Shown here: in pieces, positions 21,153 through 28,431 of the stretch
Layout of the letters: each line of letters starts with the position of its first letter
Position numbering within the stretch: position 1 is the first letter of the stretch
NCBI GenBank assembly: GCA_024704765.1
Contig: JAKMXF010000300.1
Coordinates: 434,001-498,000 of the forward strand
Direction: 5' to 3'
DNA from: Oopsacas minuta
Lineage: Eukaryota > Animalia > Porifera
DNA: 64,000 nucleotides
Made by a program: the position numbers and the translations under genes
The notes under the pieces: model-generated
What the model saw: the letters and a program-made list of their open reading frames with translations, nothing else
The model's database searches: none
Told to the model about the DNA's origin: nothing

Positions 21153-24100
21153 ATGGAGTGTGATATTTCGTACTTTTGTGGATTGCTTGAAGCGTATTTT
21201 GATCTTACAAATGTAAAACAAGAAAACTACAAAGAGATCAGTAAGTTCTGGGATTACTTTACGGATAGAAATAGAATTGTGAGTTTTATCTTAACTCTAA
21301 TTTCCAAATTAATTGCATTGGACAGTGGGAACGCATTCAGGCCGCTAGAATTGGTATACAAAGATCTCATATTCAAATGTGATAGAAAAGAGGATTTTAT
21401 GCAATGGGAACAGGTGGGAGGGAAGCTACCAATCTTTTATCAAGAGAAGGCAAGAGCTATACAACACGCTATTATAAATAATCTATATTTCATTCAGTCT
21501 TTCTACGACTGCACGAATTCAGGGCATCTACAAAAGATGTATCAGAGATGGAAGGTAGCTAGAATAGGGACAGGGAGAGCTAATAACTTTGAAGTTGGTA
21601 TCATGTCATCATTCGGGATGTTAGAAGTAAATCCAAGACAATCTCCTTTGAGAAAGGTGCTTGGGAAGGATGCGAAATTCGCGAGAGGGCTAGACGAGAT
21701 AATAATAGATTTGATTGATATTTGTCTATCTTCCGTGGGTAGAGGGAGTCTAGGACAACAACCAAGTATACAATGTCCACTCCTTGCATTAGAAAAGGTA
21801 AGTACATAGCAGATTCTACAATTTTATACTAATACGTTATTCTCTAGGTATCAGAGAGTTTGATATATCAGAAATTAATGTTCAAGCTACAACAAGCTCC
21901 TCTCCTAATGACAGTAGCTATAAGGAGTGTTCTCAGTAATCTCATTAACCTGAGACACAAGGAATCTACTGCTGCTATAAAACTATCAGATGGAATAGAA
22001 GAAGAGTCTCTTATCCCTCTTCTTAATCTATACACAGAGCTGGTAACAAGAGCCCCTGTTATTAACAAGGAAGTACTGCATGATGCTTATGAGATAATCA
22101 AACCGTTCTATTTATGGCCGTATCCACATTGTGAGATTGCTAGACTTGCCCTAGACTTCACACAGGCAGAGATCATAGCACCAGGTATTCACTACACCAG
22201 GAGAATAATAGCTGAGCATTCTCTATTAGAAATGTCTACAGCAATAAAACCTCATAGACACTATGTACTGGTGGATGGATTAGCTCCTAATGCACCAGCA
22301 TTTATACAGGCATTCACAGGGAGAGATGAAGCAGACAAGCTAGAGATGAAGAAGCATTTATTAAAGCATGTATATGTGTGTGGACACGGAGGGAACTTTG
22401 ACCTTGTGAATTTCGGAAGATGTCTAGATCATCTAGATGTATATGCAGGCCATTACTTTGAAGAGGTTATACAAGCAATAGAAGGAGCATTCAGTGAGGA
22501 GAGTGGAGAGCTGAAAGCAGAGCTACCTCAGAAACTGGAAGAGATCTATGAGAAGATTATGCAACATGGAAAGGATAAGGGAATAGAGAGAAGATTGTTC
22601 TCTGATAATGAATCAAAGATTAAGCTAGATACTTTTATACACACAATACCACCATATCCTAAAGTGAGGATACACGAGCTGAATAGCATGACAATACCAA
22701 AGTCTATAGAAGCAATACTTAGAGATATTCTAACGAGAGAGCATCTGCTTACTACATCTACTAATGTAGATTATTCTGAGTCTTACCAAGAAATAGAGAA
22801 GTCTATTGATATAGTAGAAGTATCCAATATGACTCAAGGAAGGTATGTGATGTTATGTTGTATGTAGACGATAGTTATATCACAATTTGTAGGTTCACTG
22901 TTATGAGAAATAACTTCAGAGAGAGTGCATTCAATGCTAGCATGGATGCAATGAGTAACTCAGTGAATGCAGCTCGTAGAAGTAGTAGACAGCTGTATAG
23001 AGATACATCAGGGAAGAGAGAGTCTAATCAAGAGACTGGTGGGTGTTACCAGAGGATTACTAATGACTTTCCTACAGGACATGGACGTGTTGTAGAGAAT
23101 CAGAATTACGAAGAACAGATTAGAAGCAAATCCCTCAATTCCTTCTCTAGACCCTCTAAGACATCTCTACCTACTCGATCCAGTAGATCAGAGGATTATG
23201 TAGATAACAAAGCAGTGCTGGAGAGAGCTGAGAAGATAGTTAAGATTATAGTTATAGGAACAGACAAGACAATAGGACAAGTAACTAAGGCTTTTATAAA
23301 ACTCAAACATGAGAGTCCTAGCATATTCAGCAGGTAAGCAGAGCAGGGGATATTTGTATTGATATATAACTTTATGTATTAATAGGCAATACCCACAGAT
23401 ATTCTATGTACCAGCTTCCAGCGTAGTAGGAATGCAGCTACCGTTTGAAAAGGATATTCCGGTACCTGAGCTGATCACACAGAAACATGACTTAGATCCA
23501 AAGATATACAGAGAGTGTGATAGCTCTAGAGGAGGAGATATATGGTTCGGACGGTTCATCTCTCATCTAGACGGATGGTATAAACGTAATCTCCTTCTGT
23601 CTATACAAGCTGCTATACATCTGTTCCCACAGGTCAGATACATACCGGAAGAGAGAGCTCCACAGCTGCTCAGCTTCAGATTCACTAATCCAGACAGTTC
23701 ATTCTACAATGAAGATCAGTCAATGCAAGCTAGATACAGCCCATCAAAGTTAATCAGAGATATTCTATTCTCATTCGTAAGAGAAGCAAGATGTGTATTC
23801 AACCTAAGAGTATATCATGTAGAGATGCTAGATACTTGTGGAGAAGCAAAGTACACGATATTCTCACAACGAGTAGAGCTATTCCACAGACAGCAATCTT
23901 CAGTACTGGGGGCAGTAAAGCAGAGAAGTGATCATAAAAATGTAGCTAAACCCCCCTGTGTGTCAGTAAGGATATGGGAAGTAGCATTCGATGGTACTCC
24001 ACTAAACTCAGTATGGTATCCGCTACAGAGATACTTTGCTATAAGAGCCCTGAATATACCAAGACCTGGAGATGGTTATATTCCTAATCCTGAGAGAGCA

Positions 24101-24400
24101 GGATTTGAAATTAGTGTAACTACATGCATTAAGCTATCTGGTATAGCTAATAGTGTTAGACAAAGATATGGATCTAGTGGAGAGAAGTTCCATCATCACT
24201 CATATCAGTTTGAAATCAGAGCTAAGGATAGAGAGAATCATTTCTCAGTAGCAGTAGATGGAGAAGCTCCTTTCCAGCATCTGGTGAGATTAGTAGTACG
24301 TCCTATGGAGAGTGTGCTATCAAGAGTATCCGACAAGAAACACAGGAAGAGAAGCAAATTGTCAGTTCCTATTATGACCTTTTGGCCAGTAGATTTGTGA
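21153..24400 (+). CDS. PIK3R5: PI3K class IB regulatory subunit p101/p84-like, multi-exon
   Basis: PFYLWPYPHCEIARLALDFTQAEIIAPGIHYTRRIIAEH matches the p101 WPVPYC..C..LL.FI.AEL.APGISYQRLVRAE motif. KIIVIGTDKTIGQVTKAF matches the RVVVFGSDR..GKVARAY motif, and the C-terminal VPIMTF matches LPIMTF. Motifs compared from memory. Confidence 0.75.
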
Positions 24401-24483: not shown

Positions 24484-25958
24484 TTACTTGTCTATCATCT
24501 CAATGAATATTCCTTGTCCTATAGTCTTTCTACCTTCTCTTAGAGTAAATCTAACTCCTGTATCAACAGGATATTTGTAATTAAAATCAAACATAACCTC
24601 TCCAGATTCTCCAGGCATCATCATCTTATCCCCACTCAGCTTTGCGTTATAACTCATCTCTACAATACGAGCTGGTATAGTCATCATCTCTACATACATT
24701 ATAGGCTCAAAACCTTGAAATATAGCAGTTTTCCTGCCACCCTCTGCTCCGCTACGGAGATGTATCTTAGCTTTAGCTCTCTGATAGGATTTGAGTTCAT
24801 GCTTCTCAGGACACATAACCATGCCTCTCTGAATTAAATCTGACGTCACTCCTTTAATATTCAGGCCCAATCTATCACCGGCTTCTGCTTGCAATAATGG
24901 CTTCTTGTATTTCTCAATAGAAGCTACAGTTACTTTCTTCCCACCCTTCTTACCATGTAACATAGCCTTGATGCCTTTCCCTAAGAACCCTTCAGCTAAA
25001 TAACCCATAACTATCAAGCCGTGACCTCTGACACTCATATGCTTATCTACATAGAATCTAAATGGCTTATCCATTTCCCTAACAGGTAGAGGTATGTAGC
25101 TATCCATGGTGTCGAGTAGTGTCAAGACTGAGTTCTCTCCTATTTCACTGTTTCTACAAATAAACAATCACACAGTATTTACACCAGAGAATTCAAGTTA
25201 AATAGATGCTACCTTGATTCTAATGCACATATAGCAGAGCCTTTAATGATAGGAACCTCATCACCAGGATACCCATGGTCATTCAATAGATCCCTCACCT
25301 CCAATTCTACCAGCTCTATGATCTCACTGTCTGTAACTAAATCTACTTTATTAAGATACACAACAATATGTCCTACTCCTACTTGTTTAGCTAGCAGCAG
25401 GTGTTCTCTGGTCTGAGGCATACACCCGTCTGTAGCTGATACTACCAGAATACTGCTATTCATTTGTACAGTACCTTGAATAAATATGAATTATATATAT
25501 AAGGAGGTATACACGTATACATAGGAAGTGTTCTTACCAGAAATCATATTCTTAACATAGTCAGCATGACCTGGACAATCTATATGTGAATAACTCCGCT
25601 TAGCAGTCTCGTAGCATAGCATAGCTGTGTTAATTGTAATTCCACGTTTCTGTTCTGCTGGTAGTCCATCTATTTGATTGTAACGCTTGTATTCTGCCAT
25701 CCCTCTCTCTGACAATACTCGAGTTATAGCTGAAGATAGTGTTGTCTTACCATGATCTACATGCCCAATAGTGCCCACATTAATCCATGGTTTAATCTGA
25801 GTACTTTCCAAATGAGTATTAGAGAATACACGGATTTGTGAGAGCAGAGATTTGAAAAGTTTGTTCTTAAAACAAGAATAAGAGCTCCATACAGATATCA
25901 TCACAGAGCTAAGAATTGTAAGATAAATATCCATGATTAAATGAGAAGCTAAGAACAT
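24484..25958 (-). CDS. TUFM: Mitochondrial-type elongation factor Tu, divergent domain II (3 exons; start codon uncertain, 25958-26003)
   Basis: [72 protein letters not shown] and [14 protein letters not shown]. There is an N-terminal presequence-like extension and no domain IV. Confidence 0.9.
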
Positions 25959-26037
25959 TAAAATGAGTATGCAAGAAATATTACAAATTAAATAACTGTA
26001 CAAAGTGTGAGCACAATACTCAAGTTAAAATACCGAT

Positions 26038-28431
26038 TCATGGATCTTGCTTTTTATCCAATTTGTCTAACAAAGCCTCTCCCAATATCTTAGCAGTTAC
26101 TTCATGTCCTTCTTCTATCATATTCTTGACTAACCTACCCTCTTTAGATCCGATATAAACCGCAGGAATAATCAAACTATCCTTAGATATCTCAGGGTCT
26201 GCACTCATGGTAATCAGCTTACTATTATTCTCTTTAGAATCATCATATATAATAGCTCCAATTGCTCCAGCATTCTGTGCATTAATAGCTTTCTCCTGGA
26301 ACAGACAACCTCCCCTCTCAATTAATGCGATCCTTCCTGACAAATCCACAGCTGTTACGTCACAACCTTTCAATGGGCTATACACAGCTAGAGGACCTCC
26401 TACAAAGCTTCCTACTGCAAGAGCCCTCCCGAACATAGCGGCACCCGCCAGACTAACAATCTCTGTATCAGTCCCCTCATTGAATACAACAGACCTGAAG
26501 TTAACATTAGAGTTAATTAATACTCCATTCCCGTCTCTAGCTGTTTCAGCTAGCTTTATTAACTCCTGCATCAGCTGGGTACCTGCAGCACTCAGCTGTT
26601 GCGAGTGAGCACCAGCTGGATTATATACTAACTGTAAATTCCCATTTTGTTGCTGTTGAATAGAGATACCCATCTGAGTAAGTAATTGCCTATGAGATTC
26701 AGATGCTAGGTCCAATTCATGAGCTGATAGTTGTGGACTACCTGCTTTATCAGTACAAAGATCTTGAGGCTTCTCATCCATGGTTACAGGTAGATCTCTA
26801 ATCAGATTCCTGTATAATTCGAGGGAGCGTAGCTCATCTAAACACTTCTCTTCTGTTAACCCTAATCCCTTACTACTCCCTTCTTTGGTAGATAGAGACA
26901 GAGGGAGGAGATGAGCCTCCGTAGTGAATATAAACTCATCTATGTTGATAGGAAGATCACCCTCCTCACTGAACAACAAGTATAAATACTTGAGTGTCTC
27001 TGCAAGAACAAAACTATCCATCCTATCTGCTAGTTTCTTACTCTTAACATCTTCAAAAGCAGCAAGACCACATTCTACTTTAGCATATTTCTCTAAAACC
27101 TCCAAAGTCTTCCTCCCAATCTCTAGATACATAGAGCTCCTGGTAGCTTGGTATAAGAATAAGGTCGATTCTATGAACTCAGGTCTGAGATGGTGTTGAC
27201 CCCAGTGAACTCCTAAATCAAAGTTATATGCTTCAGGTAACACCTCCCATTTATCCACAACCTGCAGGAACCCTTGATATACCCTCCTAGCTCCCCATAC
27301 ATCCCCTGCTAACACCTGTAGCCCTGGCCAGAATGCAGCTAGAGAATCAGCATATGATCTAATAGGACGTGATGGATTATCCATACTAACCTGTACCATA
27401 TGCATACCTCTACGTACATACTTTTCTATGCTGATATAGTGCTCATTGAACATATCCCAGTAATCGCGGTCTCCAAATAGAATATAGCCTTTCAGAAGGT
27501 ACTCAAAGTACGAGTCTAGTCCAGCTCCCACCCCGCTGTCTGTCCGTAGCCATTTACCATTCTCCACGTCTATAACAGATCCTACTAGGTGAGTCTTAGC
27601 GTCTCTCCTTAACCATATGGAGTGTAACACTTCTTTAGCCTTTCTCTCCCATAAAGGGTTACCTGTGAGGCGAGATAGAGCTCCAAACTCTAGAAGTAGA
27701 GTACCAGCACAAGCTGTACATGTACTACGGGTAACAGTACCTCTCCCATCTGTACCAACTACTCGTCCTGTCTTGAGGTTAATCAGAGGGTAGGGGATAC
27801 CTGTCTCACTGTAGAATGCAGGGATCAATCTGTGAGCTACCTCTGTACTCATCTCTAACAGTTCCCCTCGGTACCAAGCTACCTCTCCGTGTCCTCTAGC
27901 CTTGAGGTGCTCTGCTAGCACGTGACCAGATAACAACCCTCCTAACACCCGGATATTAGTCTCAAACACAGAGACAGAGAGATTAGCATTGAAGGTTACT
28001 TGTCTAATCACTCTCCTGATTGCATAGCTAAACTCCTGGATCTGTCCCATGAGAGCTAGTGTGTCCAGGGTGTCGATGAGTGTAAGAGAGAAGTTACCAA
28101 GAGCCTCATCTACATCTCCTCTAGAAGGAGTAACACCTCTATTTCTACCAGAACAAGAGAGAGGCATTAATTCATCATAAGGATAAGCATGTAGCATGTA
28201 CGCGGTGTATGTATGGTTGAATAGAGCTTGTACTCTATCACGTAGATCTTCCTTATAACTAGAAGTTAGTGTGACATCTGTATGTGATGTGTTAAGAGAT
28301 GAGAGGTCGTTAACTATCTTATTTATATGAGGTAAGTCTGCTTTATGATGTAATCTAGATCCTGTATCTGAGCTGGAGACAGGGTGCAAGAGGATCAGTA
28401 GGATCAGGACCATCAGATAGGGGAGATGCAT
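26038..28431 (-). CDS. EDEM3: EDEM3-like GH47 alpha-1,2-mannosidase with PA domain, intronless
   Basis: Signal peptide, YMLHAYPYDELMPLSC, GNFSLTLIDTLDTL, SVFETNIRVLGGLLSGH, CTACAGTLLLEF, DSYFEYLLK, LRPEFIES, DRMDSFVLAETLKYLYLLF and a PA domain (IALIERGGCLFQEKA.NAQ.AGA.GAIIYD). Confidence 0.95.
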   Translation of the reverse strand: MHLPYLMVLILLILLHPVSSSDTGSRLHHKADLPHINKIVNDLSSLNTSHTDVTLTSSYKEDLRDRVQALFNHTYTAYMLHAYPYDELMPLSCSGRNRGVTPSRGDVDEALGNFSLTLIDTLDTLALMGQIQEFSYAIRRVIRQVTFNANLSVSVFETNIRVLGGLLSGHVLAEHLKARGHGEVAWYRGELLEMSTEVAHRLIPAFYSETGIPYPLINLKTGRVVGTDGRGTVTRSTCTACAGTLLLEFGALSRLTGNPLWERKAKEVLHSIWLRRDAKTHLVGSVIDVENGKWLRTDSGVGAGLDSYFEYLLKGYILFGDRDYWDMFNEHYISIEKYVRRGMHMVQVSMDNPSRPIRSYADSLAAFWPGLQVLAGDVWGARRVYQGFLQVVDKWEVLPEAYNFDLGVHWGQHHLRPEFIESTLFLYQATRSSMYLEIGRKTLEVLEKYAKVECGLAAFEDVKSKKLADRMDSFVLAETLKYLYLLFSEEGDLPINIDEFIFTTEAHLLPLSLSTKEGSSKGLGLTEEKCLDELRSLELYRNLIRDLPVTMDEKPQDLCTDKAGSPQLSAHELDLASESHRQLLTQMGISIQQQQNGNLQLVYNPAGAHSQQLSAAGTQLMQELIKLAETARDGNGVLINSNVNFRSVVFNEGTDTEIVSLAGAAMFGRALAVGSFVGGPLAVYSPLKGCDVTAVDLSGRIALIERGGCLFQEKAINAQNAGAIGAIIYDDSKENNSKLITMSADPEISKDSLIIPAVYIGSKEGRLVKNMIEEGHEVTAKILGEALLDKLDKKQDP

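Follow-up and report, generated by a model that had tools for sequence, protein, structure and literature searches.

A Second Mitochondrial EF-Tu of Glass Sponges with a SelB-like Pocket, a Candidate Carrier of Small or Anionic Aminoacyl-tRNAs

How does a mitochondrial elongation factor that descends from EF-Tu in all of its domains come to present an aminoacyl pocket resembling that of SelB, and which tRNAs would such a factor carry? The question is raised by a locus in Oopsacas minuta, a glass sponge (assembly GCA_024704765.1, contig JAKMXF010000300.1), where we analyzed a window of 64,000 nucleotides (nt) (positions 434,001 to 498,000 of the contig). Within positions 24484–25958 of this window, spliced translation of the minus strand gives a compact three-exon gene, for which NCBI has a 431-amino-acid (aa) model starting at 25901. 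We refer to its product as EF-Tu B and to a more conservative paralog encoded elsewhere in the same genome as EF-Tu A. We consider it probable (roughly 0.6) that EF-Tu B is a specialized second mitochondrial EF-Tu for small or anionic aminoacyl-tRNAs. The most plausible client, proposed by analogy with other animals, would be Ser-tRNA(UCU), which lacks a D-arm.

A SelB-like pocket in a three-domain EF-Tu

In E. coli EF-Tu, whose numbering we use throughout, the aminoacyl pocket is formed by H66, E215, D216, F218, R223, T228 and N273 (K-12 tufB; K-12 selB was the reference for SelB). All six canonical pocket residues are replaced in EF-Tu B (H66M, E215D, D216K, F218M, T228M and N273R), and R223 is His. 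In SelB, the same columns hold Tyr (66), D180 (215), R181 (216), Phe (218), Ala (223), Thr (228) and R236 (273), with the motifs FRLAIDRAFTVKGAGLVVTG...AGQRIALNIAG bringing D180, R181 and R236 into register with E215, D216 and N273. Since the Asp, Lys and Arg of EF-Tu B align with these functional columns and have the same charge pattern, the resemblance to SelB is real at functional positions. It extends to bulk: by sums of standard residue volumes, the six lining residues come to 942 Å^3 in EF-Tu B and 958 Å^3 in SelB, as compared to 823 Å^3 in E. coli EF-Tu and 792 Å^3 in paralog A. The pocket of EF-Tu B, whose lining residues are three Met and one each of Asp, Lys and Arg, is thus about 15% bulkier than the canonical one and positively charged. 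Lys260 and His223 are close to Lys216 and Arg273.

A preliminary description of the locus, made from the DNA sequence alone, had proposed such a charge-reversed, SelB-like pocket, and the alignment to SelB bears it out. The codon positions that it gave for the Asp, Lys and Arg (25047, 25044 and 24873) are exact, the protein motifs that it quoted are all present in the spliced translation, and the E. coli EF-Tu and SelB strings that it gave agree with the K-12 sequences.

Are the three charged residues peculiar to EF-Tu B? D215, K/R216 and R273 are kept in 6/6 full-length B sequences, and seven exon-3 fragments agree wherever these positions are covered; position 228 is Met or Leu in the glass-sponge orthologues. 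When 1.84 billion cluster representatives were searched exhaustively with HMMER, Arg at position 273 was found solely in the eight B-family matches among the best 150. The preliminary description had asked whether Asp, Lys and Arg at these sites might be common among mitochondrial EF-Tu and EF-Tu2 sequences. For R273 they are not among these 150 matches, but an Asp-[Lys/Arg] pair at 215/216 also occurs in P0093 (D215-R216), a probable arthropod EF-Tu2 whose nearest ESM-Atlas cluster is an arthropod "mitochondrial elongation factor Tu 2". It is therefore R273 alone, and not the pair, that is unique to B.

Outside the pocket, the G1–G5 motifs are present, with the GTPase residues K24, T61, D80, H84, N135 and D138, and the residues that contact the acceptor end (K89, N90, E259 and R288) are also kept. 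As these residues are conserved, EF-Tu B would be expected to hydrolyze GTP in a ribosome-dependent manner still, and to bind aminoacyl-tRNA at its 3′ end. In domain III, the T-stem contacts differ from the canonical ones, with GGRHTP replaced by GGR(K/T/A)(T/S)A and GYRPQ by GFEPI.

One explanation for the pocket, that domain II was acquired from a SelB or eEFSec gene, is suggested by the local string similarity of B to FRLAIDRAFTVKGAGLVVTG and AGQRIALNIAG, and chimerism had been raised in the preliminary description. It is refuted domain by domain. For database searches and fold prediction we used the exon pieces, and full-length comparisons were made on the spliced protein. The Pfam domains PF00009 (GTP_EFTU), PF03144 (D2) and PF03143 (D3) all score above cutoff. 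With NCBIfam EF-Tu hidden Markov models (HMMs), the three pieces reach 137, 128 and 137 bits, about 2.5 times the 54, 52 and 55 bits of selB (TIGR00475), whose cutoff of 242 bits is not reached. In phmmer searches of the PDB, domains II and III together match bacterial and mammalian mitochondrial EF-Tu at approximately 1e-34, and domain II alone finds human and bovine mitochondrial EF-Tu first (E 7e-12); no SelB appears among the best 60 PDB matches, also when domain II is searched alone. Domain II of B is 29% identical to SelB, a level within the 26–29% of any EF-Tu, and the domain-II tree contains no grouping of B with SelB. The two-barrel fold of domains II and III is confidently predicted by AF2 (AlphaFold2; mean predicted local distance difference test score [pLDDT] 92.3), and the best 50 Foldseek matches of this model are all EF-Tu. 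EF-Tu B also lacks SelB domain IV, the winged-helix extension that binds the selenocysteine insertion sequence (SECIS). Because all three domains are EF-Tu by HMM, PDB search, fold and tree, the SelB-like pocket is a case of convergence and not of chimerism, and the likeness of the Asp, Lys and Arg is a resemblance in possible working rather than evidence of membership in the SelB family. The same results uphold the identification of the protein as a mitochondrial-type, three-domain EF-Tu without domain IV.

Two EF-Tu paralogs in glass sponges

If EF-Tu B were the sole mitochondrial EF-Tu of these animals, its pocket might simply reflect fast evolution. This was ruled out by the presence of paralog A in the same assemblies. 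Run SRR2064712 contains, besides a B-type protein (P0012), a more ordinary mitochondrial EF-Tu fragment (P0053), which as a query retrieved 299-aa exon open reading frames (ORFs) on long ENA contigs (P0177–P0180). P0177, from assembly ERZ25071281, in turn retrieved P0296 (KAI6647953.1), the O. minuta paralog A, which is annotated "Elongation factor Tu, mitochondrial" and lies on a separate contig of 282,663 nt; P0180 and P0297 are from ERZ25072740 and ERZ20067936. Both paralogs are thus paired in four glass-sponge genomes, that of O. minuta and three others (A with B: L014 with L001 in ERZ25071281, L018 with L008 in ERZ25072740 and L017 with L009 in ERZ20067936). In ERZ25071281, A is found on two contigs (L014 and L015; ctg49531_240x and ctg49387_249x) with about half the coverage of the B contig (L001, ctg49537_502x); these are probably two haplotypes assembled apart rather than a further duplication.

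The suggestion that EF-Tu B is a paralog is therefore sound. Of the canonical second factor that the preliminary description proposed to look for, a more conservative copy does exist, but it is not fully canonical. The pocket of O. minuta A consists of S66, E215, K216, I218, R223, V228 and S273, and is slightly roomier than that of E. coli EF-Tu. Position 215 is Asp in 2/5 glass-sponge A sequences, and Gln replaces Glu at position 259 in 3/5. Domain III is otherwise canonical (EEGGRHTPF and GYKP), with GGRHTP kept in 4/5. From these sequences, a fully canonical mitochondrial EF-Tu seems to be absent from glass sponges. As K216 is shared by A, part of the "charge reversal" of B predates the duplication.

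How did the two copies arise? We inferred a maximum-likelihood tree (LG+C20+F+G4) from 39 sequences comprising mitochondrial EF-Tus of vertebrates, insects, molluscs and nematodes, unnamed eukaryotic matches, and bacteria; named C. elegans or Drosophila EF-Tu2 and demosponge TUFM were outside its sampling. A and B form one clade (support 99/98) that excludes the putative arthropod EF-Tu2-like rows, with B monophyletic (100/99), and fall on the eukaryotic side of the branch that splits eukaryotic mitochondrial from bacterial sequences (100/99). Both have KPW where others have KPH, the string ISGTVQM, Lys216, and a phase-1 intron in the Gly codon of NMISG, which has the same position and phase in A (splicing models of L014 and L016) as intron 1 of B. 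The second intron of B is absent from A. The joint clade, together with the shared motifs and intron, argues for a DNA-level duplication within the sponge lineage, most likely separate from the ecdysozoan EF-Tu1/EF-Tu2 split. The organism of run SRR2064712, which is AT-rich with introns of approximately 240–330 nt, has a B-like gene (L010) as well as an A-like one (L013), and the duplication is older than the divergence of this organism from the glass sponges sampled. In the domain-I tree, domain I of L010 groups weakly with A (87/82), which may come from a splice model for its intron 1 that is probably a few codons off, or from gene conversion.

The stem branches of the two paralogs are similar in the full-length tree (0.40 and 0.39), and differ in the domain-II tree, where that of B is 1.23 substitutions per site as compared to 0.17 for A. 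Domain I of B is 58–63% identical to other EF-Tus, and domains II and III are 27–38% identical. By these comparisons, it is chiefly in domains II and III that B has changed.

The B family has since been under constraint. With exon 3 as the query of a word search, we retrieved seven orthologues, 63–77% identical, from glass-sponge ENA and Logan assemblies, and the HMMER search recovered two clusters of B type, P0002 (the glass-sponge orthologues) and P0012. The ORF is intact and synteny conserved in at least five species; the four loci that we fetched (L001, L002, L008 and L009) share the neighbor order Ig protein, GH47+PA EDEM-like protein, EF-Tu, PI3K p101-like protein and SGT1-like protein. 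Synonymous sites are saturated in most pairs of species, and where they are not, the ratio of nonsynonymous to synonymous substitution rates (dN/dS) is 0.08–0.18, which is indicative of purifying selection. For the same species pairs, dN of B is 1.2 to 1.9 times that of A (e.g., 0.17 versus 0.09). A relative with approximately 96% identity (run X5) has 19 synonymous and 15 nonsynonymous differences, none of which is at a pocket codon.

Gene structure, expression, and neighbors

Our splice model is identical to the 431-aa NCBI model (Table 1). The span 24484–25958 given in the preliminary description does contain the gene, but two short introns lie inside it, and the likely start is the ATG at 25901 (MISVW...), which agrees with the orthologue starts, rather than that at 25958. 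Two further in-frame ATGs, at 25934 and 25958, are upstream of 25901, and the depth of RNA-like contigs drops upstream of approximately 25946. These contigs are Logan contigs from run X4, which is of the same sample as the genome reads and of unrecorded library type; we call them RNA-like because of their spliced contigs and the contrast in depth between introns and exons. They join the exons at 25471/25535 (cut +3) for intron 1 and at 25153/25213 for intron 2, where depth falls to 46 from approximately 1400 in the adjoining exons. As contigs join the exons and depth collapses in both introns, EF-Tu B is transcribed and spliced as modeled.

Table 1. Coordinates in the window of EF-Tu B, its pocket residues, and its upstream neighbor
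Feature	Position	Strand	Remarks
Exon 1	25538..25901	-	Presequence and first half of G domain; from translation, orthologue starts, and NCBI model
Putative mitochondrial presequence	25794..25901	-	36 residues ahead of KPWINVG; read from sequence
Met at H66 position	25620..25622	-	Alignment to E. coli tufB
Intron 1	25475..25537	-	63 nt, GT..AG, phase 1, within Gly codon of NMISG
Exon 2	25213..25474	-	Second half of G domain (TVQMNSS...NKVD...GSAICALES); PF00009; EF-Tu models 128–133 bits versus selB 52
Intron 2	25154..25212	-	59 nt, GT..AG; not in paralog A
Exon 3	24484..25153	-	End of domain I, domains II and III; PF03144, PF03143
Domain II	~25071-24787	-	
Pocket strand: D (E215), K (D216), M (F218), H (R223), M (T228)	25006..25047	-	Alignment; conserved in orthologues; D codon 25047-25045, K codon 25044-25042
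Arg at N273 position (= SelB R236)	24871..24873	-	Invariant in B family
Domain III	~24786-24487	-	
Lengthened domain-III loop	24607..24660	-	Acidic or polar; 6–10 residues longer than in canonical EF-Tu; alignment
Stop codon (TAA)	24486-24484	-	
Upstream neighbor, intron-less 797-aa GH47 + PA-domain protein (EDEM-like)	26038..28431	-	

The putative presequence contains four basic residues, has its first acidic residue not before position 32, and is Ser-rich, with abundant hydroxylated residues. The N termini of the orthologues resemble it. A mitochondrial location of EF-Tu B would be expected. The long loop in domain III is modeled by AF2 with lower confidence, with pLDDT falling to 76–87 in blocks 161–180. 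No B sequence has a C-terminal extension, and the protein ends six residues past the last domain-III strand.

Could EF-Tu B have left elongation altogether, as an EF-Tu-derived GTPase with another role (in chaperoning, assembly or quality control) or as a decaying gene? Its domains II and III are only 27–36% identical to canonical EF-Tu, and the summed score of its pieces (approximately 401 bits) is below the TIGR00485 equivalog cutoff of 522.4, although the pieces were scanned separately and the cutoff was set for bacterial proteins. Nevertheless, we consider this very unlikely. The ORF is intact in at least five species with conserved synteny, dN/dS is low, and spliced transcripts are made. 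EF-Tu B has kept every G motif, the catalytic His84 and its contacts to the acceptor end, and the two-barrel fold is confidently predicted. A pseudogene or relaxed copy is ruled out by dN/dS, synteny, splicing and expression.

The stop codon of the upstream GH47+PA gene is 137 nt before the ATG at 25901 and 80 nt before the first in-frame EF-Tu ATG. RNA-like contigs cover the gap between the two genes (25981–26074), making co-transcription possible. On the other side, an ORF of 322 aa on the plus strand (23432–24400), convergent to EF-Tu B, has no Pfam match. ORFs of 322–345 aa, also without Pfam match, are present at the same spot in the other glass-sponge loci, and the ORF looks like a conserved lineage-specific gene.

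Candidate clients and known systems

If EF-Tu B is a working elongation factor, which aminoacyl-tRNAs does it carry? The simplest reading of these sequences is a division of labor, in which A would carry most aminoacyl-tRNAs and B a subset. An ancestral sponge mitochondrial EF-Tu gene that already had Lys216 would have duplicated at the DNA level. Copy A would have remained conservative, with a roomy pocket and canonical T-stem contacts in domain III, and presumably serves the majority of tRNAs. Copy B would have retained a working GTPase and its acceptor-end contacts, and undergone a burst of change in domains II and III that was followed by constancy; its pocket is now bulkier, cationic and SelB-like, and its T-stem contact surface is altered. 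It would then pair with GTP and those mitochondrial aminoacyl-tRNAs whose side chain is small and polar or anionic. The likeliest single client would be Ser-tRNA-Ser(UCU), the reader of the reassigned AGR codons, which has no D-arm. In function, EF-Tu B would thus be analogous to the EF-Tu2 of nematodes and arthropods, most likely having evolved separately.

The proposal of Ser-tRNA(UCU) is one of analogy. In glass-sponge mitochondria, AGR codons specify Ser and a loop replaces the D-arm of trnS(ucu), as it does in bilaterians (PMC2267718, PMC5633667). Nematode EF-Tu2 is specific for Ser-tRNA lacking the D-arm, and Drosophila likewise has two mitochondrial EF-Tus (PMC1636415, PMC4013460, PMC12221289); the preliminary description had aptly pointed to such specialized paralogs as a precedent. 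Finally, the probable arthropod EF-Tu2 P0093 has the D215-R216 pair.

Several points weigh against this proposal. Most bilaterians serve a tRNA-Ser lacking the D-arm with one EF-Tu, and such a tRNA alone needs no second factor. The client of B is proposed by analogy, and import of B into mitochondria is presumed. As the pocket of A is also unusual (S66, K216, I218, V228 and S273), our assignment of the generalist role to one of the two copies is likewise presumptive. Nematode EF-Tu2 requires a short C-terminal extension for tRNA binding, and B has no extension. Separate origin is most likely, but constraining B to group with the putative arthropod EF-Tu2-like sequences lowers the log-likelihood by 16.3 units, a borderline result that is just short of rejection in the approximately unbiased test (p-AU 0.051). 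In SelB, R236S shifts the factor toward Ser, and selection for Ser incorporation swapped R236 for Ser (10.1101/2025.02.04.636165). Since the SelB Arg equivalent to R273 thus disfavors Ser, Arg273 points more to an anionic side chain.

It is accordingly worth asking whether B is specialized for anionic aminoacyl groups, those of Asp- and Glu-tRNA or conceivably a thiolate or selenolate. In that case, Lys216 and Arg273, with Lys260 and His223, would pair with a negative side chain as R181 and R236 of SelB do with selenocysteine, compensating for degenerate or imported tRNA bodies that EF-Tu binds less tightly. The acidic pocket of canonical EF-Tu binds Asp and Glu weakly, as part of thermodynamic compensation, and EF-Tu B matches SelB in the charges at all three positions and closely in bulk. 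However, K216 is also present in A and so is not specific to B, UGA is a Trp codon in glass-sponge mitochondria, and we know of no mitochondrial system for selenocysteine (Sec) or phosphoserine (Sep). In Aphrocallistes vastus, trnD, trnE and trnT are missing from the mitochondrial genome (PMC2267718), but that of O. minuta, which has B, is reported to contain 22 tRNA genes with trnW alone missing (PMC4520895), so that the absence of trnD and trnE is no general feature. On balance, we regard specialization for anionic groups as possible but unlikely. We rank Ser-tRNA-Ser(UCU) first among the candidate clients and Asp- or Glu-tRNA second.

In a stronger form, EF-Tu B would be a dedicated carrier of an anionic or non-standard aminoacyl group. 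This might be Asp or Glu attached to tRNAs that are degenerate or imported, or in the most extreme case a residue bearing a thiolate, selenolate or phosphate. This stronger form is more doubtful again. If true, it would mean a SelB-like division of labor inside an animal organelle, a previously unknown feature of organellar decoding.

It is also conceivable that A and B split the tRNA pool by the shape of the tRNA body, or that B is the generalist and A the specialist, and that the changes in the pocket of B are drift tolerated by an organellar system that evolves fast. The D and T arms of glass-sponge mitochondrial tRNAs are polymorphic (PMC2267718), the T-stem contacts of B are non-canonical, both paralogs have long stem branches, and nematode EF-Tu1 and EF-Tu2 share out their clients by arm loss (PMC1636415). 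However, the pocket residues of B are nearly invariant over anciently diverged species while neighboring positions vary, which argues for constraint and not drift. A bulky, charged pocket is hard to square with carrying Trp, Phe, Lys and Arg, and A is the slower-evolving copy, with the canonical domain III. We thus find a split by body shape, or a generalist B, improbable. EF-Tu B is also unlikely to be connected with the +1 translational frameshifting known from glass-sponge mitochondria, since no frameshift sites were observed in the mitochondrial genome of O. minuta, which nonetheless has B (PMC4520895).

What, then, is new? EF-Tu B is already annotated in GenBank, and specialized mitochondrial EF-Tu paralogs are a known kind; in the literature that we searched, no paper connects EF-Tu with glass sponges. 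The new features are a most likely separate origin, a non-bilaterian host, the absence of a C-terminal extension, and a distinct, SelB-like pocket. Duplicated mitochondrial EF-Tus with a specialized pocket had earlier been a matter of nematodes and arthropods only, a textbook case of tRNA-protein co-evolution. Glass sponges were already known for bilaterian-like mitochondria, with AGR read as Ser, a tRNA-Ser lacking the D-arm, and degenerate tRNAs. A second EF-Tu, most likely separately duplicated and with a pocket that converges on SelB, would extend this convergence to the nuclear-encoded translation machinery. EF-Tu B is also a natural experiment on how the amino acid specificity of EF-Tu can be rebuilt, relevant to engineering EF-Tu for non-standard amino acids, and a concrete, testable candidate in the question of how decoding is shared out in the mitochondria of glass sponges. 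Several other animals have divergent mitochondrial EF-Tu-like proteins (P0111, Patella vulgata XP_050401713.1; P0130, Aphidius gifuensis XP_044002781.1; and P0093/P0103) in which the pocket is altered and the C terminus extended, and the Aphidius protein has lost the catalytic His84 and Thr61. Duplication and remodeling of mitochondrial EF-Tu may thus be wider than the nematode and Drosophila cases.

Among known systems, EF-Tu B resembles the EF-Tu2 of nematodes and arthropods (C. elegans tufm-2, Trichinella, Romanomermis and Drosophila). Like them, it is encoded in the nucleus as a second mitochondrial EF-Tu that accompanies a more general copy, and has a remodeled aminoacyl pocket, in a lineage whose mitochondrial tRNA-Ser for AGN codons lacks the D-arm; with the probable arthropod EF-Tu2 P0093, B also shares Asp followed by a basic residue at 215/216 (Asp-Arg in P0093 and Asp-Lys/Arg in B). 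Unlike ecdysozoan EF-Tu2, B has no C-terminal extension, has Arg at 273, is found in a non-bilaterian host, and most likely stems from a separate duplication. With bacterial SelB (E. coli b3590), it has in common the charges and summed bulk of the pocket and a Leu at 225, but SelB differs in its SECIS-binding domain IV, all domains of B are EF-Tu, and UGA, as noted, is a Trp codon in the mitochondria of glass sponges. Canonical TUFM (human 7A5G chain Z and bovine 1D2E and 1XB2) provides the best sequence and fold matches and has the same three domains, G motifs and N-terminal presequence, whereas B differs in its six replaced pocket residues, domains II and III that are only about 28–38% identical, a longer domain-III loop, and coexistence with A. 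Paralog A shares with B the KPW and ISGTVQM motifs, Lys216, the phase-1 intron, and the lack of a C-terminal extension, but has (mostly) E215, R223, a mostly canonical domain III, and the small residues Ser, Val and Ser at 66, 228 and 273, lacks intron 2, and has evolved more slowly.

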